From positions 310,001 to 374,000 of the IMG/VR virus record IMGVR_UViG_3300028920_000022: a stretch of DNA of 64,000 bases; one strand, 5' to 3'. Under the pieces are notes generated by a model that was not told the DNA's origin, ran no database searches, and saw nothing but the letters and a program-made list of their open reading frames with translations. The position numbers and the translations under genes are program-made. This document shows positions 3 to 57,685 of this stretch, piece by piece. Numbering within the stretch: position 1 is the stretch's first letter; the number at the start of each line of letters is the position of its first letter.

Positions 3-3000
3 TCGTTCAGCCGCACAGATATTTTTGGAACTGAGCTATATTACGACAGTCAAATTTTGACAGCAACAGCTAACACAAATAGATTATTGGTTGGGCAATA
101 TCAGATAGATTATCGCAATGGAATAGTTTATGTTGGTGTAAGTGCTAGCCAAGATTTGGATTTGGGAACCATTAATTATAAAAACGGTGTAATAAGACCG
201 GAAAACCAGCACGTCACTGCTGTTTCTGAAGTTTATTATAGTATTAGCAACATTACCGGTATAGCAGAACGTTTAGAATATGACAGTTTTGCAGATCAAG
301 CTATTACACCTAGTGACTATGATGTTACTGATGAGCGATTTTTGAATGAAGACACTACATTACCATATATTAACAGTGCTGGTCAAATCACAGTTTCTGA
401 TGATATCAAAGCTGTGCGCGGAGTATATGACGCTTATGACTTGAATAATCATGCTGAGGTAACTAATTTTGCTGTTGGAGCTACGGTTTCTTCAAACGTT
501 ATTACGCTGGACTCTGCCGGCGTAGAAAAAACAGAAAATTATACAATTAGTGCTGGCGGAACCGTGGTTGTTGATACTATTACTGCTGGCGCAGCTATTG
601 TGGGTGTGACGAGCGTTCTAAGACTTGCTGATAATGTAGAGTTGTGGGACAATGGCGGAGTATTTAACTCATACACGATTACCTTGTCTGGCGCCGGCAC
701 TCCTGTTGTCGGGCAAGCAGTAAGAGTTATTTATAATGTACAATTAAATGGTGGTGCAACCCCGGTGGTTGATTACAACCGTGGGGATTATTTTATTGAT
801 TATGAATATTTGGCGGATGAAATACTGGTAAGTTACGAATATGGTGATAATAAGATAGATTTTCGTAGTAGCTTAGCAATAGATGAAGGAGAAACTTACT
901 ACGTTACTTATAGTATCGGGGCGTTGCGTAATTCTTTATTGAGCAATTTTGGTAGTTTGGTGGATGTTCCTATTCTGAATACATTTGATGTTTCTTTGGA
1001 TAGAGAAATTTATCGTGATGCATTACAAGCGGCTTTACAGTCGTTTACCAAAGGTCCCACACTACCCGCCATTAGCCTGTTGGTTTCTCAGATTACCAAA
1101 ATTGATCCTCGTATTACCGAGTCTGTGTTTGATATTTGGTCTTTAGGGGTAAGTAATCTGTATTGGAATGCGGTAGATTATACCGGAACTCCCACCTTAA
1201 TGGCAGGAAAATTTGATAATGGCGTATTGTTGGATACATCCGGTCAGACCATCACTTTTCCTGTGTCCAGCAATTTGCGATTAGAAGAAGGCACGTTGGA
1301 GTGTTGGGTAATTCCAGAGTGGGACGGTTTAGATAATGATGCCACTTTGACCTTTTCTGATTTGACTCGGGATGGGTATCGTCTTTCTACTTCTAATATT
1401 TTTATTGGAGCCGATAGCCATAATCCAACTTATTCAGATACTTATACGTTTTCTGTTAACAGGACAGACACTAACAGCCCAATTGGCTTGCCTTCTGCTG
1501 TATATACTCAGGCTGGCTTATTTGTTTATTATGATGATGTGTTGAAGCGATGGTATATGTTAGTAAAGGATCGTCCAGACGGTTACACATATCAAGGAAC
1601 CATCCAATCATCTGGTGAAGTTTACGACGTAAATTATATTACCGATTTAGGTGAAATTACCGATTCTACTCGTAGTTTTACAGATAAAATAGAATTTTCT
1701 TTAAAGTTAGATACACACGATGCGTTAAGTCCTGACGGATATACTACCGGGGATGGTTATGTACCCGGCTATTCTTTTGATGGGATTACGTTTATGGCAG
1801 ATGATCAGCATTATATTTTTGATGCTGGTGGCACCACAAGTACCAACCGTTTTTCCATTTATAAGGATGGGCGCGGGTATTTGAATTTTGCTGTATGTGA
1901 CAATGGTCGTAGTGCTAGCGGTAAACATACTTATAAAGTAAGTGCGGATATATCGGATTGGTTAGCTGGACAAGCTCATCATTTGGCTATTTCTTGGAAA
2001 CTTAACTCTTCTGATCGCCGTGATGAAATGCATTTATTCCTGGACGGAGAAGAGGTTCCAAACATTTTACGCTTTGGTGGTCGTCCGGTATCTTCAGGTA
2101 CTGATAGGTTTAGGACAGTTAAGCCAGAATATGTGGTTGGGGCGGTTCCTAGACCTGCGTTGACTAATGATGATATGACAACCACAGTCGGTTCGGACAC
2201 AGTCGTTTCTGCTAGTGTAAACTTTACTACAGCAGGTATACTTCCCGGCGATACTATTGAAATACTAGAGGTGGGTTTTGGAACCTACACTATTTTAGCA
2301 GTAGCTGGTAATACTTTACAGTTAAATGCCGCTGTTCCTTCCAGTTTTAGTGATGCTAGGTTTACTGTTAATCAATATGCGGTAGTGGTAGAAAGCGCAA
2401 TTGATTTGTATAGCAATATAGCCGTTTCTCTGTTAAGAGGGGGTATTGAAACAGAGCTTCCTGGTGTGAGGGCAGATATCCCAGGGTATAGTATAAGTAA
2501 AAACGCCCAATTACAGAATGTTTTAACAATATTAGGAAACGCTCAGGTTGGTGATCAAATTGTTATTCGTACTTTGGGTTTGAATTTTAGGCGATGTAGA
2601 GATCGTATCTATTTATGGGGGGACATCACCAGTGTTTTAAAGACACAATTGCCGCCACCTATAAACCTGGACGAAGTCACAATAGTGCCTGTTTTGTTGC
2701 CATTGACACCAATAGGACCCAGCAACGCCACGTTGGTGGGTGGTAATTTTGTTGCTACTGGCATTGCTGCAACTCAGCCATCCAACGAAACTGAAGGCAG
2801 GGTATTAGCAGTTAGAGTGACTGGAGGAAACGTTGACTTTAGTACAAACGTAACCGTTACTATTAATGGTGCTTCAGATGGCGGAGCAACAGAGGTATTG
2901 TCGTTTAGTGCTGCGGGAATTACAAACACCGCAAACCGGTGGCAAGTTGTAACTTCTGTAGATGTTACATGTAAACCCTTAGTAACAACCTCAAACTCTA

Positions 3001-4820
3001 CCGCTGTAGAGATTAAAGAAGCATATAGCATTACCGATTCTGATGGCAACACTATTTACCCAATAATACGTTTTAGCTTCAAAACTCAAACTGGTGCCAC
3101 TTTAACAGGAGATGGATCAACAACAGTTAGCGATAGTAACGGTGTGTTTGTTGACTCTGATATTGGAAATAAAATGGTTATTAGTGCACCAGCGGCTGTG
3201 GCTGGTACTTACACCATTATCGCTCGCACATCTACTACAGAAATTAGAATTACTCCCGCTCCCGGTATAGCATTTGCCAACGGGACTTATGACATATATA
3301 ACGTTTCTCTCGGCAGAAGCGGTTTCCAGAATGGGTTTTTTACTTTTGAAACTGCTGGGCAAGTAGATGGTTATTACAATTTGCCCCAGGGCTATTATGA
3401 TTTTGATTATTCTGCATACTTAGAGGTACCATTAGATCCAGTACAAAATTCTATTGCATATATTGGGTCCGATCTAAACGGAGAAAAACAAGCTAAAGCA
3501 ATAATTGATGAATTTAGAATTCTTTCTGAAACCAGAACGGATACTCGTACAGGAGAATCTATTGATAGTAGTGAGCAGTCTATTACTACAGATTACAATT
3601 CGTTGACAGCATTTACTTCGGATAGTAGCACTTTAATGCTTCTGCATTTTGATGAATTACCATTTGTTAATGATTCTGAGTTTTGGATTAGTTCTAATAG
3701 GGATTATTTGCAGTCCGGCTCTAGTATCAATAGCAATTTTAATCAAAGCATTGTAATAACCGACCAACCGTTGGTAATTGATAACACCGGCAGATTATCC
3801 ACTACTTCAGAGGGCACCATTGAATTTTGGGTTAGCCCCCGTTTTGATACATATAACGATCCAAATGTACGTTTTTATTTTGATGCTTCCGGTTCCATAG
3901 TAGAAAACTCTACTTCCTTAACCGTAGGAACTGTACAAACGGCAGGCAGGGTTTCTAGTGTAGTAAGTGTGCGGTTACAAACTGATACTCAAAACACAGG
4001 AACTGATTATTTTGTAGGGGGAAGCGTTGCTAGCGATTATAGAACTATTAATTTGGGCAAGGCACTACCTTCTCAGAATACTCCCGTCAAGGTAACATAT
4101 GTTCCGGCAGGGCTGTCTGGAGATCGTATTTCTATATACAAAGACAACACAGGGTTCCTTAATTTCAACGTTACAGCTTCAGGAATAGACTATCAGGTAC
4201 GGCAGCCCATCTTTTGGCAGAGAGACACTTGGCACCGAATAATGGCAACCTATAAATTCAACACCTCCAGCAATTTAGATGAAGTTCGTTTATTTGTGGA
4301 TGGTGAAGAGCGTGGTATGATTTTGTTTGGGGCTGGGTTAATATTTGGCACAGGAGCTGTATTTGGGCAGGGGTTAGCCGGGCTAGATAATAGTCATTTA
4401 ATTGCAGATATTAACTTCTATGATCCTATAAATCAGTTCTACGTTGGTTCCGACTATCTTGGAGCCAATACAGCCCATGCTCGGTTTGATAATTTAAAGC
4501 TAAGTAATATCGCCAGGACTCCTACAACTATCGTGGGACAGGCTAAAGACATAAATTACAGTTCCAATTTGAGTGTGGTTTATCCTGTGGTAGAAGATGT
4601 ATACACTACATATTTGATTAATTTTGACCAACTTGTTACCAAGACCGAAGATTTGGCAGTATTAAGAGATGCTGAATATGGCATTTTCAACTTTACCTTA
4701 GACATCATTGATTCTTTTGGTATAGTAACGGAAGACGCTAAAGTGCAGCAAATTATAGAAAATCTCATTACCGCCTTGAAACCCGGACAGTCTAAGGTGA
4801 CAATTAACTATATTGAGTGA
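3..4820 (+). CDS. Large virion structural protein (baseplate wedge-like) with LamG/ConA-like domains; 5'-partial
   Basis: Frame is open from position 3, so the gene starts upstream of the window. LamG-like motifs EGTLECWV..HHLAISW..MHLFLDG and EGTIEFWV..WHRIMATY..VRLFVDG. FTKGPT and the C-terminal ALKPGQSKV resemble baseplate wedge termini. 5 DGY motifs. Confidence 0.6.
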   Translation, partial: SFSRTDIFGTELYYDSQILTATANTNRLLVGQYQIDYRNGIVYVGVSASQDLDLGTINYKNGVIRPENQHVTAVSEVYYSISNITGIAERLEYDSFADQAITPSDYDVTDERFLNEDTTLPYINSAGQITVSDDIKAVRGVYDAYDLNNHAEVTNFAVGATVSSNVITLDSAGVEKTENYTISAGGTVVVDTITAGAAIVGVTSVLRLADNVELWDNGGVFNSYTITLSGAGTPVVGQAVRVIYNVQLNGGATPVVDYNRGDYFIDYEYLADEILVSYEYGDNKIDFRSSLAIDEGETYYVTYSIGALRNSLLSNFGSLVDVPILNTFDVSLDREIYRDALQAALQSFTKGPTLPAISLLVSQITKIDPRITESVFDIWSLGVSNLYWNAVDYTGTPTLMAGKFDNGVLLDTSGQTITFPVSSNLRLEEGTLECWVIPEWDGLDNDATLTFSDLTRDGYRLSTSNIFIGADSHNPTYSDTYTFSVNRTDTNSPIGLPSAVYTQAGLFVYYDDVLKRWYMLVKDRPDGYTYQGTIQSSGEVYDVNYITDLGEITDSTRSFTDKIEFSLKLDTHDALSPDGYTTGDGYVPGYSFDGITFMADDQHYIFDAGGTTSTNRFSIYKDGRGYLNFAVCDNGRSASGKHTYKVSADISDWLAGQAHHLAISWKLNSSDRRDEMHLFLDGEEVPNILRFGGRPVSSGTDRFRTVKPEYVVGAVPRPALTNDDMTTTVGSDTVVSASVNFTTAGILPGDTIEILEVGFGTYTILAVAGNTLQLNAAVPSSFSDARFTVNQYAVVVESAIDLYSNIAVSLLRGGIETELPGVRADIPGYSISKNAQLQNVLTILGNAQVGDQIVIRTLGLNFRRCRDRIYLWGDITSVLKTQLPPPINLDEVTIVPVLLPLTPIGPSNATLVGGNFVATGIAATQPSNETEGRVLAVRVTGGNVDFSTNVTVTINGASDGGATEVLSFSAAGITNTANRWQVVTSVDVTCKPLVTTSNSTAVEIKEAYSITDSDGNTIYPIIRFSFKTQTGATLTGDGSTTVSDSNGVFVDSDIGNKMVISAPAAVAGTYTIIARTSTTEIRITPAPGIAFANGTYDIYNVSLGRSGFQNGFFTFETAGQVDGYYNLPQGYYDFDYSAYLEVPLDPVQNSIAYIGSDLNGEKQAKAIIDEFRILSETRTDTRTGESIDSSEQSITTDYNSLTAFTSDSSTLMLLHFDELPFVNDSEFWISSNRDYLQSGSSINSNFNQSIVITDQPLVIDNTGRLSTTSEGTIEFWVSPRFDTYNDPNVRFYFDASGSIVENSTSLTVGTVQTAGRVSSVVSVRLQTDTQNTGTDYFVGGSVASDYRTINLGKALPSQNTPVKVTYVPAGLSGDRISIYKDNTGFLNFNVTASGIDYQVRQPIFWQRDTWHRIMATYKFNTSSNLDEVRLFVDGEERGMILFGAGLIFGTGAVFGQGLAGLDNSHLIADINFYDPINQFYVGSDYLGANTAHARFDNLKLSNIARTPTTIVGQAKDINYSSNLSVVYPVVEDVYTTYLINFDQLVTKTEDLAVLRDAEYGIFNFTLDIIDSFGIVTEDAKVQQIIENLITALKPGQSKVTINYIE

Positions 4821-4821
4821 C

Positions 4822-7748
4822 ATGACAAAGAGAATAGATGTATCTACAGTTCAGAATACCTGGCATGACGCACAGTTCGTTGATAAAGCGGATATGGACG
4901 TTGAACAAAACTACAATAACGTTTCAAACTCTGCTATTGTCAATAACTTCATGGGTTCCGGAGTTTTGCCAGACAACCCCCAACAGCTAGTTTTATTCGA
5001 TTCAGATGATTTGACCGGAACACAGGCGGAAATCTTAGCCGCTGGCAATTTGATGGTACCGGTTTAGATGTGCATTCGCAACCCAGCGATACTACTTTGG
5101 GGAACCAAATTGAAGTAGAGCTAACCGGATCTGATGTATTAGGCAGATTGAGTGTAAAGGTGCTAATTGTGGGCTTGTCTTTTGATGGCGAACTACAAAT
5201 GGACCGTATGTACTTCTATGTTAACGAAAAACAGGTTACGTCCAAGCATTATGCCGAAGTTTTAACCATTATGTTTAATGACTTCAAGGGCAATAATAAT
5301 TGTTCTCGCGCTCTTGGTGGCAGGATTGTGATGCGGGAGGCGAACTCTTTTCAACTTTCTCGCGATGCCAAGATGGTAGCGCAAGATATCATGCCGGATT
5401 TGTTTTTCCGAGATTTTAAAGTGGCGGATCAAAGTGTTGGTTTGTTTGCTACTTTGCAGGCAGGAATTGGTTCAGAACATGATGTAGACGCTCTTGCAAT
5501 CAACGTGACCGGCAAACAGCCACATCGAACTATAAACCCCAATGATGTTACAACCCAAATAGGACAGAAATTCTTGGCACGTTCTGACAATATTCAGAAG
5601 GTAACTTTATTGTTGGGCGTTGAACGAAATACCTCTGCTACCGAAGATGCTTGGTATGATTGGTCTGGGGATTTGGTGGTAAGCATTTATTCTTTGCAAA
5701 CTACCGTCAATTGTCCAACACAAATAGTTCCGGGTTTGGACATTGAATATGATCCTAGTGCAGCTCCTTTGGCAGAGGTAAGTTTTAGCCAGGCAGAGCT
5801 GGAAAGTGTAGGATATGTATTAACCGCTGTAGCTCAGCCTGTAGATTTTGTTTTTAGTAATACATCTATAGCTAGCGCTGGTGGAATCACTTCTGGGAAC
5901 TATTATGCAGTTACTTTTAGACGATCTGGTGCTGCAGCAGACGGATACATATTTTCCGAAGTAGCTACTAACAAGATAGACGATTCCAGGTTAACAATAT
6001 ATAGTGGAATATGGACCGATGTTGTAGAAGAAGATTTGTGGTTCCAGGTATGGTCTGATGCCGCCAAAGTATCTGATGGTAAGGGATATGATGCCGGAAA
6101 CGGAATACAGTATAATAAAACTGTTTTAAGTTCAACAACCGGTGCCTACATAGACAATGAAGTTGGCGGATTTTCGTTTGTAAACACCGGGCAGGGAATT
6201 ACAAACACTGGTATAATTCAAGCCACCACTCAACAAAGTGTTACGACTCAAGACGAACGTACCGGTGATAATACCTATTCGCGCAAACAGTATATTCCAT
6301 CATTTAGTTTTGTAAACTCTACTACTTTAGCTAGTTTGAAGGTAACTTCTGAACCATTAATTATTGGTTGCGCCGTTGATATTAACCCTCAGGTTACAGA
6401 TACTATCACTGGAAATCAAGATTATCCAGGTCTAGCTAAAGGTGACGAATTTACCATAATTAACCCCGATGCTTCTTTACTTTCGCTTCGGTTGATGGGT
6501 AGAAAGCTAATTCCAAACAATACCTGCAACGCGGTAGGTTATCGTATATATGGTGTTGATTTGTGTGTGGATGGCTATGGCGATGTTAATGGAGACGGAT
6601 ATATAGACAGTTCCGATGTTGCCGCCGCTGCGGCTCTTTTAGGAGAAAGCGTTTGGTCTTCTTCTACTCAGCAGAAAATAGTTGATGGCTATATTACTAC
6701 GTTAGAACTATTGCGGGCGGATGTGGACGGAGATGGGTATATTACATCTAACGATGTTGATTTAATTACAAATTTTGTAAACCGTAGTATTAATGCGTTC
6801 CCCGTAGGCACATCATTCAACCACCTTACTCTGACGGTACAACAGAGTATAGGGCGATATGATGGGTATTTCGATTGTAATGGTCGTGTCAGGCTGGATG
6901 GATATAGTGGATATAACATTGTTGATCCTTCCAGTTTAAGTGCTGCTGAGCTGATTTATGATGGATATTTGTCCGCGGTCAGTATTGATGGTAGTGACAG
7001 CGCTTTTACCACAGTCCCATTTGTTACAGTACCTTATCAAGTAGAGTTCCAACCATTCTGGCAGGACTATTTGTTGTCCTTTTCCAGTAGTGCCAGAATG
7101 CTACCAGCTTCATTTACTTATGCCACCAGTGCAACTGCGACCTCCTGTGCTACAGCCACCACGTTTGAATGTACCAACAGGAATGAGGGGACCCCTTCGT
7201 GCGATCCTGGTAGAACAGAAATTATGGTTCCTTCTAATCTAATCATTGGTACAGGAGGAGAGATCCTTCGACCAGATGGCAATCATTATAAAGTGGATAT
7301 GGAAATTGGTACGGTAATATTACGTTTGCCGGATAGCCCACTTTCCGAATCGGTAATTGATGTTTTCCGCAGTTTCGTAGCAGATCGTGGCGATGGGTTT
7401 ACCAACCATGCGTACCCTGCCATGCGTTATGCTGATTGTACTACTGTTCAACCGGAAGATTTGGCTTTAAATAAGGTACGTTTTGGCGTTTCACTGCAGT
7501 CATTTGCCCCCAATTTGGATGGCTATACAGATGCCGATGGTTATGGCATTATTATTGATGACATTATTGGCGTTTATATGGACCATAGTTCCGGTATTTT
7601 GAAGTTAACAATTAAGGATTTGTCTGTTGATAGCATTTATCTTACTCTGGTGACAAAGATTCAAATCCAGGTTTTCCTGAAGAAGGGAGGGTGGAATAAC
7701 AGTGTTTTGATTGTGGAACCAGATGAAGTCTCAGGGCTAATTTCCTAA
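4822..7748 (+). CDS. Virion structural protein with dockerin/EF-hand-like Ca-binding pair; one gene interrupted by a 1-nt frameshift near 5049-5051
   Basis: ORFs 4813-5067 (probable ATG 4822) and 5070-7748 join as ...AAGN-F-DGTGLDVHSQPSD if one T is added to AATTTGAT. Contains GDVNGDGYIDSSD and ADVDGDGYITSND. 10 DGY motifs. Confidence 0.6.
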
Positions 7749-9000: not shown

Positions 9001-9716
9001 AACTGTCTATTGTAATACCTGTACACAATAATTTTAACTTTACCAAGGCGTGCATAAACGATCTGCGTAGATTACCAAAAGATCACGAAATTATTATTGT
9101 GGATAATGGATCTAGCAAACCAGACAAGAAGAGAAAAATGATTACGGATCGAACTGCACCATATGTTTCTATGCTAGCTAAAGAAATGGAAAATTTGGTG
9201 TACATCAGGAATGATGAGAATCTGGGGTTTGCCAAGGCATCCAATCAGGGCTATGCGGCATCACAAGGAGAGTTTGTGATGTTTTTGAATAACGATATTC
9301 GAGTCAAAAGCGATCATGAAACCTGGACACAACCGATTATGGCGGCTGCTGAGGATGGCTCTCTTGTTGGTCCAACTGGGGGTCTGTTGGACGAGAACTT
9401 AAAATTCCTGAGAGAAGAAGATAAACTTATTGATTCTAAATATTTCTATATGTGTGCTTGGAATTTGACCGCTAAAAAAGAAACGTGGGAAAAACTTAAG
9501 GTGGATGATTGTGTTGGACCGTTTATAGAAGACTGGGGGTCCTATTTTGAAGATACTGATTTGTCATTTAGAGCTAAAGAACTAAATATTTCATTTAAAA
9601 TACTACCCGCCCCTGTTTTACATTTTGGTCGGATGACAGGAAAGCAGCTAGGCTTGCAACAACTATATGCAGAAGCACATACAAAATTCGTTAACAAGTG
9701 GGTTGGTCGCATATGA
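8997..9716 (+). CDS. Glycosyltransferase family 2
   Basis: KLSIVIPVHN, IIIVDNGS, NLGFAKASNQG, FLNND, YFEDTDL. ATG 8997 overlaps the upstream stop (ATGA). Confidence 0.9.
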   Translation: MKLSIVIPVHNNFNFTKACINDLRRLPKDHEIIIVDNGSSKPDKKRKMITDRTAPYVSMLAKEMENLVYIRNDENLGFAKASNQGYAASQGEFVMFLNNDIRVKSDHETWTQPIMAAAEDGSLVGPTGGLLDENLKFLREEDKLIDSKYFYMCAWNLTAKKETWEKLKVDDCVGPFIEDWGSYFEDTDLSFRAKELNISFKILPAPVLHFGRMTGKQLGLQQLYAEAHTKFVNKWVGRI

Positions 9717-22221: not shown

Positions 22222-22222
22222 A

Positions 22223-27047: not shown

Positions 27048-27063
27048 TATTTTGCTGTTTAGA

Positions 27064-48228: not shown

Positions 48229-51200
48229 ATGACACGTTATCCTGATAATGTAGATACAGGCGGGACTGGTGCATCAGCAACTCTGCCAGACGTAATTGAC
48301 AACGTTTCCCCAGTTAGTGCAATAGTAGTAAATAGGCTACGTAATGCAATTCTGGCTATCGAGAACGAGCTGGGTATAAACCCTAGCGAACGTTTTGGTA
48401 CAGTTAGAGACCGTTTAGATTGCTTGGAGTTTGGTCCTTGTGGTAGTGGCGGGGGCGGATCTTTATCTACTATCCTTCAAGATGGCGTCACGGTTATGAA
48501 CAATGTAGAGGCTCTGAATATTATTGGAGCCAATGTTACGGATGCAGGCGACCACCAGGCAGATGTTAATTTTTCTACTTTTATGTTGCTGGACGGATCC
48601 AGAGCAGCTACCGCTAATTGGGACCTGGGCGGAAATCGTATTACTAACCTAGCTGACCCTATTAATCCCCAGGACGCAGTAACAATGGCATATGTAGATG
48701 CTTTGTTCTCAGATGGCTATGCACCCGTATTAGAAACATTAACAGTATCTGCTGATGGACAAACTGTATTTACCTTAAGTCAAGTACCAGAATTACCAGG
48801 CGCTGTAGCGTTTTTCGCAGAGGGTATTAAACAGGAATTTGGTGTAGATTATACAGTGTCTGGTGCGAATATACATTATACCGGCGCAGAACCACTGTTA
48901 ACTACGGACACTATTGATGTTATTTATTATGTGTTAAGCTCTGGTTTTCCTGGTGGTGGAATACATCAGACATTAGCACAAACATTATTTTATGGAAATG
49001 TTACCGGCGGAGAAGATATCGTTGTCTCTGTCACTGACGCTATTACTAGCGAAAACCCCGCTGTTCCCGTATCTGTTATTGGTGACTTAAGTATAACTGG
49101 AAAATTAACTGTAGGTGGACTAATTGATCCAACCGGTCTTGTTCTTGATACACAGGGAAGCACTCCTGGGGGTGTACCTGCAGCTAATAAAGGAACCATT
49201 TGGTATCGCGCAAGTGATGAGCACATGGTTTACACTACAGATGCTGGTTTGGTGATTGATTTAACTACGGGAATAGTACCAACATTGGCAGAGGTTTTGG
49301 ATGCTGGTAACACTACGGATGGTTATGATATTATCATGTCAAATGGTAGTATTATTACCGCAACTACCGGCACTGGTGCCACTGACGGTTCTGATGTAGA
49401 TATATTAGCTGGTCCTGCTACCGGTACAGGGGCAGGTGGAGCAGTTAATATCAATGGTGGGTCAGCGGCAGCCGGAGCAGGTGGTAATGTAGTTATATAT
49501 GGCGGAGATGGTGGTACTGAAGGCGACGTATTAGTTGGGGCGGCTGGGAATACAGTTTTTTCTGTTATTGGTGATGTTTTAGGAACTATTACTTTTGATA
49601 AGGATGTTGCTCCCATTATCAATCAAACAGCTCCAACTTCTGGTGCCGGGTCTGATTTTCGTATTGATGTTCAGGACGCAACAACTACGGGAACTGGCGG
49701 AGATTTTATAGTTAATGCCGGATCGGGAGCGGGAGTATCACAGGGCGGAGCGATTGATCTTAATGCTGGCGGAACAGGAACGGGTTCTGGCGGTATAGTT
49801 TCCATTACTGGCGGGGATGGAACAATTAATGGCGGAACAATAACCCTTGAATCTGGTGCAGCAGCAACCGGCGGGGATTTGGAGTTGTTTGCCGGAGATT
49901 CTGCGGCAGGTACAGGTGGCAACGTTATAGTAAAAACTCAGGGCAACACAATTGGCGATATACAGTTTTTGTTGGATGCCAACACTGTAGCAGAGTTTTT
50001 GGGAAGTGCGCTGGGTACTTTTAGGTTTGGTAGGGCAACCACTCCTGTAATTAATGTTGAACAAAATACATCAGGAGCTGGTGCTGCTTTTACTATCACT
50101 TCACAGAAAGGCGGAAGTGGTGGGGTTAACGATGGTGGTGGATTATTCTTAAATGGTGGTAATGCTAGTGATTTGGGTGGCGACGGTGGAGCTGTTGAGA
50201 TTAGTGGTGGTACCGGAACTAATACTGGAATAATTGCACTTCATACAAATATTATAGAAATTGATGAAAATACTGTTGATATTCGTTCTGTAACCGATGG
50301 GTCTGTAAATGCAGATAGTGGTAGTTTTGCGATTCATTCAGGCAACATTACTGATGCAGGAAATAGTGGCTCGGTTATTTTCAATAGTGGATCTTCAGCA
50401 GGTGGAGATTCTGGCAATTTAGATTTATATACTGGCGGGGCGTCTACCTCAGGATCTATCCAGGCGTATACTGGAGATGGATATACAGATTCAGGTGATA
50501 TTGACATATACACCGGAGACGGGTACACAAGCTCTGGTGACATTGATATAGTAACTGGGGATGCCACTTACGGAACTGCTGGGCATTTACATCTTACTGC
50601 TGGTGATAGTTTATCAGGAAATCAGTCGGATATCTATATTGCTAGCGGAAGGGTGTTAACGGGGACTGATCGTAATCTAGTGAATATTTATGGCGGAGAT
50701 GGGTATTCTAATGGGTCTACGATTAATATTATTGCTGGAGCCGGGTATTGGGGTAGTGGTGGTACTCTTAATTTATATGGTGGATCCGGATCTACCAGTT
50801 CTGTACACGCTGATGATTTAGGACCTGGAGATGGAGGATCTGTTTTAGTTAGTGGAGGGGGTTGCATAAGTGGTACATGTGGTGATGCGAGCCTAGGTGG
50901 TGGCGTTACTGCACACGGAACTGGGGGCAATGTTTATATAAACGGTGGATTTACTCATGATGGACCATCAGCTGGAAGTGTTTATATTTCTGGTGGTGTA
51001 GATTATGGTGGAAATGATGATGGTTATGTAATATTTAGTATGGCTGACGAAGAAGTTGGCAGATTCGGGCGCGATCCGAGTGCATTAGTGTGTTCCTTAC
51101 AGGTACCAATTAAACTGAAGGAAGTTGCCAATCCGGGAAGACCAGCGACAGGATATGCTTATTTGTATTTATCGTCAACTGATGGGCATTTATGGATAAA

Positions 51201-51237
51201 TAAAGATGATGGCTCTGCTAGGGATTTGGAGACATAA
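48229..51237 (+). CDS. Glycine-rich fibre-like virion protein
   Basis: RITNLADPINPQDAVTMAYVD neck motif; many GG-x-hydrophobic-x-I-x-x-G beta-repeats; 6 DGY. Confidence 0.7.
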   Translation: MTRYPDNVDTGGTGASATLPDVIDNVSPVSAIVVNRLRNAILAIENELGINPSERFGTVRDRLDCLEFGPCGSGGGGSLSTILQDGVTVMNNVEALNIIGANVTDAGDHQADVNFSTFMLLDGSRAATANWDLGGNRITNLADPINPQDAVTMAYVDALFSDGYAPVLETLTVSADGQTVFTLSQVPELPGAVAFFAEGIKQEFGVDYTVSGANIHYTGAEPLLTTDTIDVIYYVLSSGFPGGGIHQTLAQTLFYGNVTGGEDIVVSVTDAITSENPAVPVSVIGDLSITGKLTVGGLIDPTGLVLDTQGSTPGGVPAANKGTIWYRASDEHMVYTTDAGLVIDLTTGIVPTLAEVLDAGNTTDGYDIIMSNGSIITATTGTGATDGSDVDILAGPATGTGAGGAVNINGGSAAAGAGGNVVIYGGDGGTEGDVLVGAAGNTVFSVIGDVLGTITFDKDVAPIINQTAPTSGAGSDFRIDVQDATTTGTGGDFIVNAGSGAGVSQGGAIDLNAGGTGTGSGGIVSITGGDGTINGGTITLESGAAATGGDLELFAGDSAAGTGGNVIVKTQGNTIGDIQFLLDANTVAEFLGSALGTFRFGRATTPVINVEQNTSGAGAAFTITSQKGGSGGVNDGGGLFLNGGNASDLGGDGGAVEISGGTGTNTGIIALHTNIIEIDENTVDIRSVTDGSVNADSGSFAIHSGNITDAGNSGSVIFNSGSSAGGDSGNLDLYTGGASTSGSIQAYTGDGYTDSGDIDIYTGDGYTSSGDIDIVTGDATYGTAGHLHLTAGDSLSGNQSDIYIASGRVLTGTDRNLVNIYGGDGYSNGSTINIIAGAGYWGSGGTLNLYGGSGSTSSVHADDLGPGDGGSVLVSGGGCISGTCGDASLGGGVTAHGTGGNVYINGGFTHDGPSAGSVYISGGVDYGGNDDGYVIFSMADEEVGRFGRDPSALVCSLQVPIKLKEVANPGRPATGYAYLYLSSTDGHLWINKDDGSARDLET

Positions 51238-51239
51238 AT

Positions 51240-51626: not shown

Positions 51627-52408
51627 GAATTACTGTTCTTTGCCCAACACATCGCGGTCCAACTGAGTTGCTTAGTGTGACCCGAATGTTTCGGAATCAG
51701 CGTCACCAGGATCGGCGATTGGTGTTTATTGAGAACGGACCTGCGCTGGGCGTCTCACGGTCGTTAGGAATTGTTGCGGATGCTGTGATGCAGTCCGATC
51801 ATTCCAAAGTTTCGGCGCTCAACGTCGGGTTGGCGTGGCTCCGCACGCATGGAGGCGGGGCTTGGGCTTTATGGGATGATGACGACTACTATGGTCCTGA
51901 ATATTTAACCGGAGTAGCTGTTGTTTTGCCAAAATATAATTTGATTGGTAAACGTTCCTTATATGTACGCCGTAATGATGGGCGGTTGTGGTTGATAGAA
52001 CGTTCTGCCGGATGGCCACTTGGTCATAGCTTTGCTGGTTGGTCGGATTGTTGTGATTTTCGTGAGTGTAATAGGTGGGGAGAAGATGATTTCTTCGTAC
52101 AAGATATGTTAGATCATGGTGCACAAATTGGCGACTCTGGCGCCACTTCATTTGTGTGGCAACGATCAGGTGATTTATCGAAACATATTTGGCCAGCTAC
52201 GGATGACCAAATTGCCCAAATTTTAACACTTAAAAGCGCCAATAGTAAAATTATTGATTATGGAAATGCGAATCGCATATTGGTAGACTGTGTTGAGAAA
52301 CAGTCAGGAAGAGTTGTAGAACTTCCTGATTTCGATCCGCTCAACGTACCTGGAATTCCCATCGAATTCCAAGAAAAAATTAAACAGTTGAGGGTTAATA
52401 ATGGTTAG
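51623..52408 (+). CDS. Glycosyltransferase family 2 embedded in the fibre module
   Basis: RITVLCPT, ALNVG, ALWDDDDYYGPEYL, GEDD. Confidence 0.8.
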   Translation: MRITVLCPTHRGPTELLSVTRMFRNQRHQDRRLVFIENGPALGVSRSLGIVADAVMQSDHSKVSALNVGLAWLRTHGGGAWALWDDDDYYGPEYLTGVAVVLPKYNLIGKRSLYVRRNDGRLWLIERSAGWPLGHSFAGWSDCCDFRECNRWGEDDFFVQDMLDHGAQIGDSGATSFVWQRSGDLSKHIWPATDDQIAQILTLKSANSKIIDYGNANRILVDCVEKQSGRVVELPDFDPLNVPGIPIEFQEKIKQLRVNNG

Positions 52409-55400
52409 AACTAGAGAAGGATTTTTAGGCGGAATAACCATATTGGATGAGGATGGTTACGGATTGGTTACAGCTAGTAATGCCCGTATTACCAACGTTA
52501 CCGACCCTGTTAATCCACAAGATGCTGCCACTAAAAACTATGTAGATGGTTATTTTGAAGCTCATAATGAATGGAGTGAAATTTTAGCTATTGGAAATAT
52601 AACTGATGGAAATAATCCTACAATTAGTACTGGAGACAAGATTGTAGGAGAAACAGATCTTGAATTAGACTGTGCTGCTGATGGATATGTAATAGTTAAT
52701 GCTGGTGGAACTGAAATTGTTCGTTTCGGTTTGGGAAGCTTGGCGATGCAGTTTGGGGATTCTGATAATGCAATTATTGGATTCCCCACTTCGGCTACTG
52801 ATGGTGTTAGCCTTACTATTAGGGGACAGGGTGGGAACGCAAGTTTCGCAGATGGCGGAAATGTGTTTATCATGGGTGGTGATAGCGGTGGCGGTGGCGG
52901 TTCTGCTGGTGGAAATGTTAACATTTCATCTGGCGACGGCTCGGGGGGCTCCCCGGGTGACATTAATATTGAAACCCCAGCCGTGACAAGTTCTTGTGGC
53001 GGAAGTATTAATATAAACACCGCCAACTCTAGCGCTTGTGGTCCTGGTGGAATTTTTGTCACTGTTGGAAATACTTCTGCTGGTTATGGTGACAGCTACT
53101 CATATAGTCCTAATGTTGGCTCGATACCATCTCCAGTATCTTATAAACTTGTTTTAAGAACAGAAGACGGATCTGCTGTAGGCAGTTGCGGAGGTATTTT
53201 ATTTAAAGTTGGTGATGCCAATTATACCCCAGCTCCATTGACTTTAATTGGTGGTGACTCATCTTCTGCTACAGGGACCAAGGGTGGAGATGTTATAGTT
53301 CGTTCGGGTAATAGTGACTTTGGTGAAGGTGGGGACCTTTTTATTATATCGGGATCATCTAGTGGTACCGGAGATGGTGGAGATATTTATATTCGTACCG
53401 GAGATGGTGGAGTAGGTGCCGGGGATGGCTATATTATCTTCGAAGCCACTTCGAGTAATGAAATTGCTCAATTTAATAATTTAAACGGAAATCCTACACT
53501 TCAATTTGGCAATCATGGAGCCGCACTAATTACACAAGATAGCATAGCAACTGCCGCTGAAGCGTTTACCATTAGAGCACAATCTTCCACTGGTTCAACT
53601 GGCGGTGATTTAGAATTATATTCTGGTGATTCTGCTTATGCCCAGTACCCAGGTGATGTTAACATTTACAGCGGTGTTGGTGGAGGACAAGTTTATTCTG
53701 GTAATATTAATCTTTCTACGGATTTGGGGTATACTTCGATCGGTGGTGGCGGCAATATTTCTATTACCACAAATCAAAGCAATGGTTTGAGGGGTGGATC
53801 TATTCTTTTGCAAACCGGTGACGCTTCTAGTGGTGGCCCAGGTACTATCACAATTGCAACCGGAAATGCGAATTCTGGCACTGGGAACCAACATATCAAT
53901 ATAACTGCCGGAAACCAAATCGCTTCATTTAGCGGCGCAGCGGGTAGCGTAAATCTTACTTCCGGAAATGGTACCGGAACATCTGATGCCGGAAGTGTAA
54001 CACTTACAGCAGGAAATTGTGATACTGGGGCGCCAGGAACAATTCTTCTTGTTGCTGGAGATGCCGGCGGCGGAGTAGATGGTGGCGACGTTACTATTCG
54101 AAGTGGATCTGGCGGCAGCGGAGCAGGAGATGGTTATATTATTTTTGAAGCCAGTGTTAGCGGTGAAATTGCTCAATTCAACAATTTAAACGGAAATCCT
54201 ACACTTCAGTTTGATAATCACGGATCTGCAGAAATTAATGGATCTCAAAATTTCTCAATCTATGGGTTAGATAGCGGAACCGTTGATACTTTAATGATGG
54301 GATTGAGCGGTGATAATCTTTTGGTTGGCGATGGCACAAGCGTTGATGATGTGAGGTTGCAATCAGCAACCGCGGTTGAAGCATGGGTTGCAGGATCCAG
54401 AGTGATCGAAATGAGTACCGGCAGTCTTTTCTTTGCATCAGCGGTTGCCGGACCGGTTATTCAACAAGAGCAGACAGGCAACGAAAATTGTGATGATTTG
54501 ACATTACACGCTCAAAATGTCGTAGTAACAGCTGGTGGTCCATTTACTGCAGGAGATATGGTCGTTGCAGCCGGGCAGGTTTCATCAGATAGTGGCGCCG
54601 GCACCAGTAGTGGTGGTGATGTAATCTTACAACACGGAAAATACCAAGACACTGGTTTGCTTCAAGGCGCTAAATTAGGACAAGATGTAAATGGACAATA
54701 TATAAGTGTAGGAGCCGCTTCGGTTTCATCAACCGGCATGGTGCGTGGACCGGAAGACTTCTCGATCTATGGATTAAACACTACTCCGGCTAATGCTAGA
54801 TTAATAGCTTTTGATGATGACGATCTTAGAGTTGGTGATACTAATAATAGCAATTTGTATCTTTCAACTGGTCCCGCTGCGGGAGCCGACGGGTATGTTG
54901 TTTTAGAATCTGATGTTAATGAAATTGTTAGGTTTAGCAGTGATGGAACAGGGGATGCATTTATAGGGTTTGATGTTGGATTTACTAATGGTATTGGTTT
55001 AGCCATAGAGGCTCAAACTACCATGGCTGGAATTGGTGGCGAGCTTTATTTAGCCGCAGGTGATAGTAGCTCTGGATTCGATGGAAATGATGTAACTATA
55101 AAATCTGGCACAGCAGGTGCCGGGCCAGGTAGTGATGGATACATTATTGGAATGATTGGCGGCACAACTGAGTTTACAATAGGACCCAATTACTTTGCGC
55201 ATAGCCCTAATGGATGTAATGTTTCTAGAACAGGTTATTGGCGTAACGGAGAAATATTAGACATTGCTGCACTTGTGAACGGAGGAGCGTTTGATGCCAA
55301 TATTTTGTGGTGGTACAATGATACACTTTTACTTGGAGATGCTACTCGTTCTGACTCTTCTACTTTAGCATCTAATACTGCAGTAAATTTGCGTATTGGT

Positions 55401-56765
55401 AATGATGGTGTTTTTAGGGTTCGTAGTGGCTGGGTAGAAATTCACCCTAATGGAGCCGCCAGCTCTGGGCTTGGAACCATTGCCGGACCTGAAAATTTTG
55501 ACATTTATGGGTTAAATACTGTTCCTGCTGACGCAAGACTAATAGGGCTGGATGGTAACGATCTTCGTGTTGGTGACGCTAATAATAGCAATTTGTATCT
55601 GTCAACCGGACAAGCCGTACCATCTGGGGTTGATGGATATATTATATTCGAACGTGGCTCCGGAAATGAAATATTTAGAGTAGATGAAGATGGTTATAAT
55701 AATATAGATCGTATTTTCTTCTATGGTGATCGTGATTATGATACCATGATTACTAGAGATATTCCAGGAGCTACCACTAGTAACTTATCTAGAGATTTAA
55801 TCATACAAGGACAAACTGGATATTATCCAAATAGATCTGGAAATCTTATCTTGTCCAGCGGTGACTTGACTTCCTACGGTAGTGGAAGTCTGTATGGCGC
55901 CATTGAGTTTCATATTGGAGGATATGAGTCCGATACCACCTTTAAGATGAATGATGATGGTAGAATTGAGTGGGGCGCTGATAGTTTGATGGGGCTTGTG
56001 GCTACTAGTACTACAGGCGCCGGTGCGACTATGGAAATATACGCTCAAGAATCTTCCGCCAATAACGGTGGAGATGTAGATATCCGAGGCGGAGAGGCTT
56101 CTGGTGTGACGGGCGATGGTGGTGATGTTGATATCACTGGAGGAGCATGTCCTAGCAATACCGGCGGAAATGTTAATATATATTCTGGTGATGGTGACGC
56201 AAGCGGTGTGGTCAATATAGGCTATAGCGGATCCTTTGATATCGTTACTTTTGGGGTACAGACACTTGTTGAACCAACGACTGCATACTACATTTCTCGC
56301 TCTAGAGTAGCATCTTCTGATGAATACGCCCTGAAAGCTTTTTCTCCTAATTCGGTATTAACTACACTTGCCCCAAATGGTACCGCTGATGGCTATACCC
56401 AACAGGTTATCTTTGAAGTAGGAACAACAACTACTTGGAATGGCGATCAGGAAACCTGTTTGGCCGTTGCTATACCTACAAATTATTATGGGAAAATAAC
56501 TGTGGATGTTACCGCAGAAGACCAGGCTGATCCCCAGAACGCTTATGGCTATGCTAATTCGTTCTTGATCAGTAATGATGCAGGTGTAGTTACCATCAGA
56601 GATAGTAGCCTGGCTCCTACTGAACAAGATCCTCAGGCTACCGGTGTGTCAGCGACAGTAGATGCAAATGGTGATGATGTTAGGGTTAGAGTAACAGGTA
56701 ATGTTGGAGAAAATTGGACCTGGACAGCTATGATGCATGGAATTGTATGTGAGCGTAGTGTATGA
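52401..56765 (+). CDS. Glycine-rich fibre-like virion protein with internal duplicated modules
   Basis: RITNVTDPVNPQDAATKNYVD neck motif, GGD-x-x-I repeats, duplicated modules; 10 DGY. Confidence 0.7.
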   Translation: MVRTREGFLGGITILDEDGYGLVTASNARITNVTDPVNPQDAATKNYVDGYFEAHNEWSEILAIGNITDGNNPTISTGDKIVGETDLELDCAADGYVIVNAGGTEIVRFGLGSLAMQFGDSDNAIIGFPTSATDGVSLTIRGQGGNASFADGGNVFIMGGDSGGGGGSAGGNVNISSGDGSGGSPGDINIETPAVTSSCGGSININTANSSACGPGGIFVTVGNTSAGYGDSYSYSPNVGSIPSPVSYKLVLRTEDGSAVGSCGGILFKVGDANYTPAPLTLIGGDSSSATGTKGGDVIVRSGNSDFGEGGDLFIISGSSSGTGDGGDIYIRTGDGGVGAGDGYIIFEATSSNEIAQFNNLNGNPTLQFGNHGAALITQDSIATAAEAFTIRAQSSTGSTGGDLELYSGDSAYAQYPGDVNIYSGVGGGQVYSGNINLSTDLGYTSIGGGGNISITTNQSNGLRGGSILLQTGDASSGGPGTITIATGNANSGTGNQHINITAGNQIASFSGAAGSVNLTSGNGTGTSDAGSVTLTAGNCDTGAPGTILLVAGDAGGGVDGGDVTIRSGSGGSGAGDGYIIFEASVSGEIAQFNNLNGNPTLQFDNHGSAEINGSQNFSIYGLDSGTVDTLMMGLSGDNLLVGDGTSVDDVRLQSATAVEAWVAGSRVIEMSTGSLFFASAVAGPVIQQEQTGNENCDDLTLHAQNVVVTAGGPFTAGDMVVAAGQVSSDSGAGTSSGGDVILQHGKYQDTGLLQGAKLGQDVNGQYISVGAASVSSTGMVRGPEDFSIYGLNTTPANARLIAFDDDDLRVGDTNNSNLYLSTGPAAGADGYVVLESDVNEIVRFSSDGTGDAFIGFDVGFTNGIGLAIEAQTTMAGIGGELYLAAGDSSSGFDGNDVTIKSGTAGAGPGSDGYIIGMIGGTTEFTIGPNYFAHSPNGCNVSRTGYWRNGEILDIAALVNGGAFDANILWWYNDTLLLGDATRSDSSTLASNTAVNLRIGNDGVFRVRSGWVEIHPNGAASSGLGTIAGPENFDIYGLNTVPADARLIGLDGNDLRVGDANNSNLYLSTGQAVPSGVDGYIIFERGSGNEIFRVDEDGYNNIDRIFFYGDRDYDTMITRDIPGATTSNLSRDLIIQGQTGYYPNRSGNLILSSGDLTSYGSGSLYGAIEFHIGGYESDTTFKMNDDGRIEWGADSLMGLVATSTTGAGATMEIYAQESSANNGGDVDIRGGEASGVTGDGGDVDITGGACPSNTGGNVNIYSGDGDASGVVNIGYSGSFDIVTFGVQTLVEPTTAYYISRSRVASSDEYALKAFSPNSVLTTLAPNGTADGYTQQVIFEVGTTTTWNGDQETCLAVAIPTNYYGKITVDVTAEDQADPQNAYGYANSFLISNDAGVVTIRDSSLAPTEQDPQATGVSATVDANGDDVRVRVTGNVGENWTWTAMMHGIVCERSV

Positions 56766-57685
56766 AAAAGTTAGTACATAATATTCTGCACCCAACAAAT
56801 ATCCCAAATTGCAAATTATGGTGGGAAGGAGATTTTACCCCTAACGCGGGTAACGTTATAGATGCTGATGGTGATGATTATGTTTATTCTTCTATTCCCA
56901 ATCGCGGAGAACTTGGAGGAGACTTTAGTTCTGCCACTTATAAACCATTAGTTTCTCACCTAGAGAGCGGAGGTTTTCCTAGAAGAGTACCATATTTTAC
57001 AGACGGTTATCAAATAAGCTCTTTGGCTCCAAGTAGCTGGAAGTTTTTGCATAAGGAATTTACTCTTGTGTTTGTAGTTTTTTGTGCCGATACAGGTACA
57101 ATATTTAGTACTTTTAGTGATCCTAGTGATTCAGGAATAGATATAGTTTTGTGGAAAGAAGCGGATGGTGGAGATATAACATTGTATGTTGGTGATGGTT
57201 CTGGTGGCGTGGCTATAAATGATAGCGCCCATGGTTTAACGGATAATATATTACATGTGTGTTCAATTAGATTAGCACAAACCGGTTATGATGTTAGGAT
57301 TGATCAAGAAACAAAATTAGAAGATGTTCCAGCTTGGCCGTTAACTGTGGATGATCCCCCAGATACCTTAAACATTGCATGCCGAAGCGGAGTTACTAAT
57401 CAATTTACGGGTAATCTAATCGCTGCTGTTGCATATGATGGCTATCTGGCTTTAGAGCAATTGGAACAAATAGAATATCACTTTATCTCTAAATATGGAG
57501 ATCAAAGCGTTCATGTGGCTCAAAAACCTACTTTTTATTTTAATATTGATATGACACCCTATGGTTATCATATAGACGTTGAAAATCCGGATTCGGGGTT
57601 GTATGCGAATAGATTGGCGGATTTTTCTGGGAATGCTCATGATGCTTTCCAAAATACCAAAAATAAACAGGGAAAAATAGATTAG
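56762..57685 (+). CDS. LamG-like receptor-binding/fibre protein, short paralog of 58273 and 60834
   Basis: CKLWWEGDF..SIPNRG, WKFLH, KPTFYF, DFSGNAH..QNTKNKQG all align with the N-terminal parts of the two downstream genes. Confidence 0.65.
   Translation: MKKLVHNILHPTNIPNCKLWWEGDFTPNAGNVIDADGDDYVYSSIPNRGELGGDFSSATYKPLVSHLESGGFPRRVPYFTDGYQISSLAPSSWKFLHKEFTLVFVVFCADTGTIFSTFSDPSDSGIDIVLWKEADGGDITLYVGDGSGGVAINDSAHGLTDNILHVCSIRLAQTGYDVRIDQETKLEDVPAWPLTVDDPPDTLNIACRSGVTNQFTGNLIAAVAYDGYLALEQLEQIEYHFISKYGDQSVHVAQKPTFYFNIDMTPYGYHIDVENPDSGLYANRLADFSGNAHDAFQNTKNKQGKID

Follow-up and report, generated by a model that had tools for sequence, protein, structure and literature searches.

A strongly enriched Asp-Gly-Tyr tripeptide on tail proteins of uncultivated jumbo phages, a possible but unproven mark for glycan decoration

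In a large family of uncultivated jumbo phages, the outer baseplate and fibre proteins carry the tripeptide Asp-Gly-Tyr (DGY) about 16 times more often than chance predicts. In nearly all loci, the two baseplate genes concerned are followed by genes for soluble glycosyltransferases. We are highly confident that DGY is a real, selected motif on tail proteins. That it marks tyrosines for glycosylation by the phage is compatible with the data but remains tentative and, in our estimate, less likely than not, as no chemical evidence of any modification exists. The analysis started from a window of 64,000 nucleotides (positions 310,001 to 374,000 of IMG/VR record IMGVR_UViG_3300028920_000022, a jumbo-phage contig of 458 kb). 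All coordinates below refer to this window, and all genes given with coordinates lie on the plus strand.

To determine whether the motif is indeed overrepresented, we counted DGY in all open reading frames of the window. The original prediction, that DGY recurs in virion proteins between positions 1371 and 57445 and is nearly absent elsewhere, was confirmed, and all its counts were exact. DGY occurs 5 times in 3–4820, 10 times in 5070–7748 (where 10 of 16 DG are followed by Y), 6 times in 48229–51237, 10 times in 52401–56765, twice in 56762–57685, twice in 16732–17397, and not at all in any other ORF. The span from 1371 to 57445 runs from the first to the last in-frame DGY codon triplet. The five tail proteins comprise 5260 aa and hold 33 DGY, whereas composition predicts 2.09 (Poisson, P = 5.6e-28), in line with the roughly two copies estimated originally, and a first-order Markov model predicts 7.2 (P = 2.4e-12). 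DGY is by far the top tripeptide, as the next-best reaches only P of about 7e-5. The signal is thus stronger than initially stated. It is also highly specific: DGY accounts for 33 of 79 DG, while NGY occurs in 0 of 35 NG, SGY in 1 of 82 SG and GGY in 1 of 106 GG; DGF was found once and DGW not at all.

To exclude that the enrichment results from a DNA-level repeat or a restriction-type site, we searched for the corresponding degenerate sequence GAYGGNTAY, which occurs 35 times in frame but only twice off frame and once on the minus strand. Codon usage inside the motif equals the background, so the selection acts on the protein, as originally proposed. Since some copies lie in duplicated modules and tandem pairs, we further corrected for internal repeats. 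BLAST grouping left 29 components, merging of neighbours left 24, and the strictest manual grouping of shaft modules, dockerin loops and tandem pairs left 18, which still corresponds to P(≥18 | 2.09) = 1.3e-11. An artefact of composition, internal repeats or a DNA repeat is therefore practically excluded, and the excess was reproduced in 76 divergent loci (see below).

The first two carriers are predicted to be peripheral baseplate proteins. They directly follow a gp25-like gene (PF10934/phrog_2669) and a Baseplate_J/gp6-like gene (PF04865/phrog_6), an order corresponding to the baseplate periphery of contractile tails (sheath initiator, Baseplate_J, large wedge protein, fibre). However, no direct sequence or fold match to gp7 or gpI was obtained. 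ORF 3–4820 encodes the C-terminal 1605 aa of a 2218-aa protein with a LamG-like domain near the C-terminus, and its DGY codons are located at 1371, 1578, 1734, 1752 and 3366; those at 1734 and 1752 form a variable tandem (DGYx)n loop. The following region, 4822–7748, is a single gene of about 975 aa that is split in the window by a missing T near 5049–5056. This corrects the original prediction in that all ten of its DGY (5940, 6570, 6594, 6684, 6732, 6861, 6897, 6960, 7518 and 7536) lie in the 5070–7748 part. The product is a peripheral baseplate or fibre protein with jelly-roll/CBM-like domains and a dockerin.

The remaining carriers are located further downstream. ORF 48229–51237 encodes a Gly-rich fibre-like protein with a collar motif (..DA.T..YVD) and DGY at 48712, 49318, 50476, 50518, 50698 and 51019. 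ORF 52401–56765 encodes a fibre-like protein with repeated shaft modules, G..G..DGY(I/V)I(F)E...EI.(R/Q)F, and DGY at 52452, 52545, 52680, 53424, 54129, 54888, 55134, 55632, 55689 and 56388. The 307-aa ORF 56762–57685 downstream of it, to which no function was assigned, contains DGY at 57002 and 57437. No relatives of the 892-aa or 1454-aa proteins were found in INPHARED, no DGY protein matched a PHROG, and neither fibre had a sequence relative in the PDB. Foldseek searches returned only the dockerin and weak CBM/jelly-roll matches. Close homologues of the 52401 fibre in IMG/VR were limited to the contig itself, and more distant homologues were recovered only by wider protein searches; where DGY-rich fibres came from other samples, the contigs were too short to reveal their context.

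To determine whether the enrichment is conserved, we analyzed the two baseplate-periphery proteins in 76 related loci. Together they carry 932 DGY among 2407 DG (observed/expected 16), and DGY is the top tripeptide in both baseplate families and in the fibre homologues. The motif occurs at 45 and 83 distinct alignment sites in the two families, compared to 7/18 for DGF and 10/16 for NGY, indicating recurrent gains. No flanking consensus was apparent in 1049 contexts. Fibres sharing the collar motif displayed a bimodal distribution, 102 having no DGY and 28 having 5–18. In contrast, T4 virion proteins contain 4 DGY against 1.8 expected, 361 other viral ORFs have an observed/expected ratio of 1.2, and inner baseplate proteins and enzymes of the phages are not enriched. 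Thus, the excess is not a general property of phage tail proteins. Tandem DGYx arrays, however, are common in unrelated viral and bacterial proteins, and we accordingly gave the variable loop less weight as an indication of a sequon; the unit may have intrinsic structural merit.

We next determined the structural context of the motif. AlphaFold predictions, including one for the beta-sandwich segment 1158–2600, which holds four DGY, place DG either at the tip of a hairpin turn, with pLDDT above 90 and Tyr starting the next strand, or in flexible loops such as the loop at 190–205 of this model, which is predicted with low confidence and not as a helix. Where Tyr is absent from an aligned site, it is replaced by T, I, V, S, K, N or E, and Phe appears in only 6 of 332 cells. 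The tyrosines thus look exposed rather than buried, although exposure was inferred from substitutions and secondary structure and not from coordinates. The motif resides in unrelated structural contexts, as had been proposed, and two of the 33 sites (residues 509 and 555 of the 892-aa ORF) are true DxDxDG dockerin calcium loops.

These features raise the possibility that DGY is a lineage-specific structural idiom, that is, a favoured hairpin-closing or metal-binding unit stabilizing long beta-rich tail proteins and inherited with shared modules. Asp carboxylate and Tyr phenolate could bind Ca2+ or Fe3+, possibly on trimer axes, by analogy with the HxH iron sites of T4 fibres. The tight turns, the dockerin loops, the occurrence of D or N at position −2 in seven of 33 sites and the wide occurrence of tandem DGYx repeats are in agreement with this notion. 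In addition, many fibre DGY lie inside conserved shaft modules (DGYIIFE..EVARW; DGY-rich fibres share DGY(I/V)I(F)..E(V/I)ARW), where a structural role is plausible. However, a type I' turn should accept Asn-Gly and an aromatic packing site should accept Phe, both inconsistent with the observed frequencies, and the alternatives K, E, S and N point to an exposed site. Gains at about 128 different sites, in folds as different as a dockerin and a beta-sandwich, do not look like one structural module, and T4 tail proteins show no such excess. We therefore regard this explanation as unlikely, although it is not excluded. Known classes of Asp-Gly turns do not account for the motif either: neither DxDxDG calcium loops of the dockerin/EF-hand type nor Asx-Gly type I' hairpin turns require Tyr after Gly or exclude Asn-Gly, and together they cover only a minority of the sites.

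The two baseplate genes are followed by a glycan-synthesis cluster of about 30 ORFs (7834–34010). It begins with a GT-B (GT4/GT1-like) glycosyltransferase (7834–9000), which is the gene most constantly found right after the two DGY-rich genes, and a GT2 glycosyltransferase (8961–9716) as the second conserved neighbour. The cluster comprises GT4, several GT2/GT-A, GT1-like and GT29-like transferases, KdsA-like, CMP-sugar cytidylyltransferase and NanA/DHDPS-like enzymes, a DegT aminotransferase, GDP-mannose 4,6-dehydratase, epimerases, a formyltransferase, a GNAT and methyltransferases. The only non-tail ORF with DGY, the GT-A/GT2-like gene 16732–17397, is part of it and contains the motif in 2 of its 3 DG (16882 and 17125). 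No transmembrane-like segment was detected in any ORF of the cluster apart from one borderline window in the GT29-like ORF, and Pfam searches identified no Wzx, Wzy or oligosaccharyltransferase family. The absence of flippase, polymerase and oligosaccharyltransferase fits direct modification of a cytoplasmic acceptor, but argues against glycosylation as in S-layers, which uses membrane oligosaccharyltransferases.

To determine whether the glycosyltransferases co-occur with DGY-rich proteins, we examined the neighbourhood of the baseplate genes in the related loci. The GT4-like gene follows them in almost every relative, down to 28–30% identity. However, the number of DGY does not track the number of adjacent glycosyltransferase homologues (Spearman 0.21, p = 0.11), and exceptions occur. 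One relative (locus L204) has the glycosyltransferases but only 2 DGY in 3682 aa. Another (L163/L174) has 22 DGY but no GT4 homologue within 9.5 kb, nor on its 77–106 kb contigs by pattern search; as it harbours one weak GT1_3-like ORF nearby and is represented by partial contigs only, it is neither a clean counter-example nor a confirmation. Among the relatives examined, none was found that clearly lacks glycosyltransferases and could serve as a comparison.

The original prediction also considered sulfation of the tyrosine by a sulfotransferase encoded at 17394–18140. This assignment is weak: the protein matches PF13469 at E = 0.0015 and 19.3 bits, below the 27-bit cut-off, over 42 residues at its N-terminal end only (residues 12–53), and no PDB relative was found. 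The gene was not seen among the conserved neighbours in relatives, although the flanks examined do not reach that distance. Tyr sulfation prefers Asp at position −1, whereas here it is Gly. As no kinase, tyrosinase or peroxidase was found in the window, phosphorylation, oxidation to DOPA or dityrosine cross-linking lack a candidate enzyme there as well. Despite the specificity for Tyr, we consider a modification of this kind very unlikely.

Taken together, the proposal that DGY is a recognition motif for decoration of the particle is partly supported. The enrichment of DGY, its selection at the protein level, its recurrence on tail proteins and the predicted position of Asp-Gly in turns or loops with Tyr following are what the analysis demonstrates; exposure of the Tyr, recognition by another factor and attachment of a glycan are inferred. 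The strict D-G-Y requirement, the lack of any flanking consensus and the many independent gains suggest that a trans-acting factor of these phages reads the tripeptide. The leading candidate mechanism would be direct cytoplasmic O-glycosylation of the Tyr hydroxyl by the soluble glycosyltransferases encoded right after the baseplate genes, with the GT4-like (7834) and GT2 (8961) enzymes as conserved core. In this phage, the nucleotide-sugar, transferase and methyltransferase cluster would extend the glycan, resulting in a glycan coat on the outer tail parts. However, the glycosyltransferases could instead modify DNA or host glycans, and both roles are discussed in PMC12619734.

Alternatively, the Asp-Gly turn might present Tyr as a non-covalent contact element, either for multivalent weak adhesion to host surface glycans, as in Tyr/Gly/Asp-rich binding loops, or as a docking site for another virion protein, a possibility also raised originally. 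The host-facing nature of the carriers, the location at hairpin tips and flexible loops, the variable-length Tyr-rich loop inserted in a beta-hairpin, the recurrent gains and the lack of exchange with Phe would agree with such a role. In contrast, DGY runs along whole fibre shafts including the virion-proximal collar and is not concentrated at distal tips, and the probable receptor-binding LamG proteins have none. This reading also leaves unexplained the need for Asp rather than Asn, the need for Gly, and the conserved glycosyltransferase neighbour. We consider it possible but unlikely.

No DGY motif or sequon was found in the literature searched. PMC12619734 describes moraphages, another or an unresolved jumbo lineage, and only speculates on the roles of glycosyltransferases. 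According to the same paper, virion glycosylation in mycobacteriophages (Freeman et al. 2023) places glycans on the C-termini of capsid and tail-tube subunits; phage-encoded glycosyltransferases would similarly decorate structural proteins in the cytoplasm before release, but here the candidate acceptors are Tyr residues in a dispersed tripeptide on baseplate and fibre proteins. Chloroviruses and mimivirus glycosylate capsids or fibrils by soluble virus-encoded enzymes, with large sets of nucleotide-sugar enzymes, glycosyltransferases and methyltransferases, no membrane machinery and atypical sequons; these are eukaryotic viruses using Asn or unknown linkages, and no DGY motif is known to be involved. 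The O-glycosylation motif D-(S/T)-(A/I/L/V/M/T) of Bacteroidota is likewise a strict tripeptide starting with Asp, without a wider consensus and scattered over many surface proteins, but the acceptor is Ser or Thr at position 2 and the host-encoded reaction is periplasmic and uses a lipid-linked glycan. That system is the subject of PMC8698959. Tyrosine O-glycosylation of S-layer proteins in Paenibacillus and Thermoanaerobacter (PMC2943079) is a precedent for a Tyr-linked glycan in prokaryotes, but depends on membrane oligosaccharyltransferases and lipid carriers, and no DGY consensus is known. The tandem (DGYx)n arrays, but not the dispersed single sites, share the period of four with Gly repeats of the GxxxG type as in FliH/YscL.

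In its furthest-reaching form, which we consider doubtful, DGY would be the sequon of a previously unknown cytoplasmic, phage-encoded protein tyrosine O-glycosylation system, with which a widespread family of 200–460 kb jumbo phages coats its outer baseplate and fibres with complex glycans of the Kdo-like, amino-deoxy-sugar and methylated type. The number of sites would be tuned by recurrent gain and loss of the tripeptide and by expansion of (DGYx)n loops. If DGY is a glycosylation tag, it would be the first sequon defined for bacteriophage tail proteins and the first tyrosine-directed one in a virus. It would give a use to the large, unexplained glycosyltransferase clusters of jumbo phages and make virion glycan coats predictable from sequence, with a bearing on host range, defence evasion and immune recognition of phages. 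Even if it is not a sequon, a strict three-residue motif gained at more than a hundred sites in host-facing proteins across a whole phage family is an unusually clean case of selection on a short linear motif in viruses of bacteria and calls for a structural or biochemical explanation.

Finally, the window itself provides an internal negative control. Two paralogous LamG proteins encoded at 58273–60837 and 60834–63386 hold 19 DG but no DGY, as originally noted; their genes have a high GC content (0.51–0.55) and are probably a recent acquisition.

To determine whether the tripeptide Asp-Gly-Tyr (DGY) is as frequent as proposed, we translated every ORF of 100 aa or more in the window and counted the motif. 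The counts made by eye in the original prediction were reproduced exactly: 5 DGY in 3-4820, 10 in 5070-7748, where 10 of 16 DG are followed by Y, 6 in 48229-51237, 10 in 52401-56765, 2 in 56762-57685 and 2 in 16732-17397. No DGY occurs in any other ORF, including two LamG ORFs that hold 19 DG. Thus, the observation of a recurrent DGY motif held in full. The five DGY-rich proteins total 5260 aa, for which composition predicts 2.09 DGY and a first-order Markov model predicts 7.2. The observed number of 33 corresponds to P = 5.6e-28 and 2.4e-12, respectively, and no other tripeptide does better than about 7e-5. Tabulation of all x-G-z combinations gave a stark picture: D-G-Y occurs 33 times, while N-G-Y occurs in 0 of 35 NG, S-G-Y in 1 of 82, G-G-Y in 1 of 106, DGF once and DGW not at all.

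To determine whether the enrichment resides in the DNA or in the protein, we searched for GAYGGNTAY, which occurs 35 times in frame, twice off frame and once on the other strand. Codon choice within the motif equals the overall usage of the genes, and the signal is therefore in the protein, as had been proposed. Repeats do inflate the count, as there are shaft modules in 52401-56765, two dockerin loops and several tandem pairs. However, BLAST-based collapsing still leaves 29 groups, merging of neighbours leaves 24, and our strictest manual grouping leaves 18, giving P of about 1e-11.

The window represents positions 310001-374000 of IMGVR_UViG_3300028920_000022, a contig of 458,729 bp. The genes upstream occur in the order of a gp25-like sheath initiator (PF10934, phrog_2669), a Baseplate_J/gp6-like wedge protein of 1078 aa (PF04865, phrog_6), the 2218-aa protein whose C-terminal 1605 aa open the window (3-4820), and then gene 4822-7748. 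These two DGY-rich proteins therefore occupy the peripheral-wedge and fibre slots of a contractile-tail baseplate operon, while the inner parts carry 0-1 DGY. Gene 4822-7748 is a single gene of about 975 aa that is interrupted in the window (4822-5070, break near 5049-5056). The window reads AATTTGATGG where relatives read AACTTTGATGG or the like, so that one T of a T-run is missing and the reading frame is lost. All 20 or more relatives have one continuous ORF of about 975-1000 aa, indicating either an assembly error or a real frameshift. The AlphaFold model of this protein has a mean pLDDT of 65, and Foldseek shows jelly-roll/CBM-like domains and a bona fide dockerin. The proteins encoded by 48229-51237 and 52401-56765 are Gly-rich fibre proteins with the common collar motif (..DA.TK.YVD). 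They matched no PHROG and no PDB sequence, and a search of the deposited phage genomes (INPHARED), run for 52401-56765 only, likewise returned nothing. The two LamG proteins (58273-63386) are paralogous, with shared stretches that are 74-79% identical in DNA. Their GC content is 0.51-0.55 compared to 0.31-0.45 in the rest of the window, and with 19 DG but no DGY they look like a recent foreign acquisition.

The region 7834-34010 is a predicted glycan-synthesis cluster. It contains GT4-like, at least four GT2/GT-A-like, GT1-like and GT29-like transferases, KdsA-like, CMP-sugar cytidylyltransferase and NanA/DHDPS-like enzymes, a DegT aminotransferase, GDP-mannose 4,6-dehydratase, epimerases, a formyltransferase, a GNAT and several methyltransferases. 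The GT29-like ORF, of a eukaryote-type sialyltransferase family, lies beside the NanA/DHDPS-like, KdsA-like and CMP-sugar cytidylyltransferase genes (25465-29450), which looks like a Kdo- or sialic-acid-like ulosonic acid pathway and transferase in a phage. GC content drops to 0.30-0.32 in the middle of the cluster (18000-28000), compared to about 0.38-0.41 in the flanking tail and replication genes, and the cluster therefore seems mosaic in origin. The small enzyme encoded by 16732-17397 has a predicted GT-A/GT2-like fold (structure match TM 0.83) and is the only non-tail ORF with DGY, as 2 of its 3 DG are DGY, which may be chance or self-modification. By a hydropathy scan, no ORF of the cluster has a transmembrane segment, apart from one borderline window in the GT29-like ORF. 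Because no membrane enzyme is present, glycosylation of Tyr as in S-layers is not a fit mechanistically. Sulfation of the Tyr by the product of the ORF at 17394, the alternative modification offered by the original prediction, rests on a sub-threshold hit and is unlikely. The cluster is followed by a TubZ/PhuZ-like tubulin (34641-36011; PF00091 plus PF22453), which is conserved next to the glycan cluster in the far clade of relatives, by UvsW- and DnaB-type helicases, and by a ribonucleotide reductase (41938-45081). The latter matches phage RNRs in two pieces covering only 65-68% of its 1047 aa, suggesting a large insertion, possibly an intein.

To determine whether the motif is maintained among relatives, we performed pattern and profile searches of IMG/VR, which gave 79 loci of the same family on contigs of up to 458 kb. 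In the 76 loci where both baseplate proteins are complete, these hold 932 DGY among 2407 DG (39%), whereas only 58 are expected (observed/expected 16). Every locus has at least 2 DGY, and most have 8-23. DGY is the top tripeptide in each subfamily, but it is not enriched in the upstream gp6-like protein or in 144 downstream enzymes. Eight sites in the 975-aa protein are invariant DGY across the near clade (54-78% identity), while the same columns read MIY, DNY, DDY or DMV in the far clade. Across 70-71 non-identical sequences, DGY occupies 45 distinct sites in one family and 83 in the other, many of them in a single lineage. The corresponding numbers were lower for the controls DGF (7 and 18), NGY (10 and 16), DGI (16 and 34) and DGT (20 and 37). 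This pattern is recurrent gain and not just inheritance. In addition, one hairpin loop of the 2218-aa protein holds a tandem (DGYx)n array of three to eight units in different phages, for example PDGYVDGYADGYVDGYDGYSDGYYPLDGYVPGY, while part of the family lacks the loop entirely.

Fibre homologues from other metagenomes carry 6-13 DGY each, 81 in total compared to 4.5 expected. Among 150 representatives that share the collar motif, the count is bimodal, with 102 having none and 28 having 5-18. The collar is followed by DGY in 43 cases, but by DTK, DTE, DTQ and others in most. On one contig (locus L212), a fibre protein with 18 DGY has an anti-Pycsar Apyc1-like metallo-beta-lactamase gene two genes upstream (L212:562-1377). 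This contig comes from the same sample as L166, a member of the family. In contrast, the controls showed no excess: T4 virion proteins (8812 aa) have 4 DGY with 1.8 expected, 4 of 50 DG being followed by Y, and 361 other viral ORFs have an observed/expected ratio of 1.2.

To elucidate the structural context of the motif, we modelled the protein segment encoded by 1158-2600, which yielded a confident prediction (68 sequences, pLDDT 85.7). In this model, D72-G73 form a two-residue hairpin turn and Y74 starts the next strand, D141-G142 end a four-residue loop and Y143 starts the next strand, and the tandem DGY loop is a low-confidence excursion. In the model of the 892-aa ORF 5070-7748, one DGY precedes a strand, four lie in the dockerin, and five lie in segments that are highly conserved in sequence yet modelled below pLDDT 50. 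At DGY sites where DG is kept but Tyr is not, the replacement is T, I, V, S, K, N, E or Q, and Phe appears in only 6 of 332 cells. That points to an exposed strand-start position where Tyr is chosen for its own chemistry, although exposure is inferred here from substitutions and predicted structure. No flanking consensus exists in 1049 distinct 15-mers. A non-covalent, Tyr-presenting contact or docking element is a serious rival to modification, although we consider it less likely.

To determine whether glycosyltransferases are linked to the motif, we examined the genes next to the two baseplate genes. A homologue of the GT4-like gene 7834 follows them in nearly every locus that has enough downstream DNA, usually together with the GT2 gene 8961. 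The same holds in a clade only 28-30% identical, whose two proteins still have 6 and 3 DGY compared to 0.67 and 0.33 expected. In one distant relative (L176:12842-18859), the GT4-like neighbour is a 775-aa protein followed by a 1230-aa protein with the GT1-like domain of window ORF 15171, so these are larger multi-domain transferases. However, the link is not one-to-one. Locus L204 keeps the transferases but has only 2 DGY. Locus L163/L174 has 22 DGY, but an oxidoreductase, an exonuclease, one weak GT1_3-like ORF, a deoxyribosyltransferase and a radical-SAM gene lie downstream, and a pattern search found no GT4 homologue on its partial contigs. Furthermore, DGY number does not correlate with the number of neighbouring GT homologues (rho 0.21, p 0.11, without phylogenetic correction).

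Taken together, the analysis demonstrates a strict tripeptide that is selected at the protein level, is confined, apart from the two copies in 16732-17397, to host-facing tail proteins, has been gained repeatedly across a whole phage family, is located at turns and loops, and is accompanied by soluble glycosyltransferases. That a trans-acting factor reads the motif, and that this factor is a glycosyltransferase acting on the Tyr hydroxyl, is inferred. The original prediction that DGY serves as a sequon is thus supported in part: in our view it is the single most likely mechanism, but only tentatively so, and it remains unproven. It would account for the strictness of the motif, the missing flanks, the site turnover, the tandem arrays, the distribution along whole fibres and the conserved transferase neighbour. 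No paper in the searched library mentions a DGY motif, and phage virion glycosylation is known only for capsid and tail-tube C-termini in mycobacteriophages (as summarised in PMC12619734). If the motif proves to be a sequon, virion glycosylation would extend to a form that differs from those cases; if not, DGY is still an unexplained and unusually clean short linear motif in phage tail proteins.

A second serious rival, which we regard as only slightly less likely than a non-covalent element, is that DGY represents a lineage-specific structural or metal-binding idiom. The exclusion of Asn-Gly and of Phe stands against it, while it is supported by the conserved shaft module DGY(I/V)I(F)..E(V/I)ARW and by the finding that tandem DGYx repeats are common in unrelated viral and bacterial proteins. 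Coding arrays of (DGYx)3 are far more common than chance in unrelated sequences, with at least 119 viral loci (L030-L148) and at least 120 loci in bacterial genomes (L214-L333). Among these are small Gly/Tyr/Asp low-complexity phage proteins (GDGYGDGYGDGY...), Bacteroidota proteins of 500-630 aa (NGYWDGYYDGYY...), and Clostridia proteins with AKKDGYRDGYRDGYKEGK.
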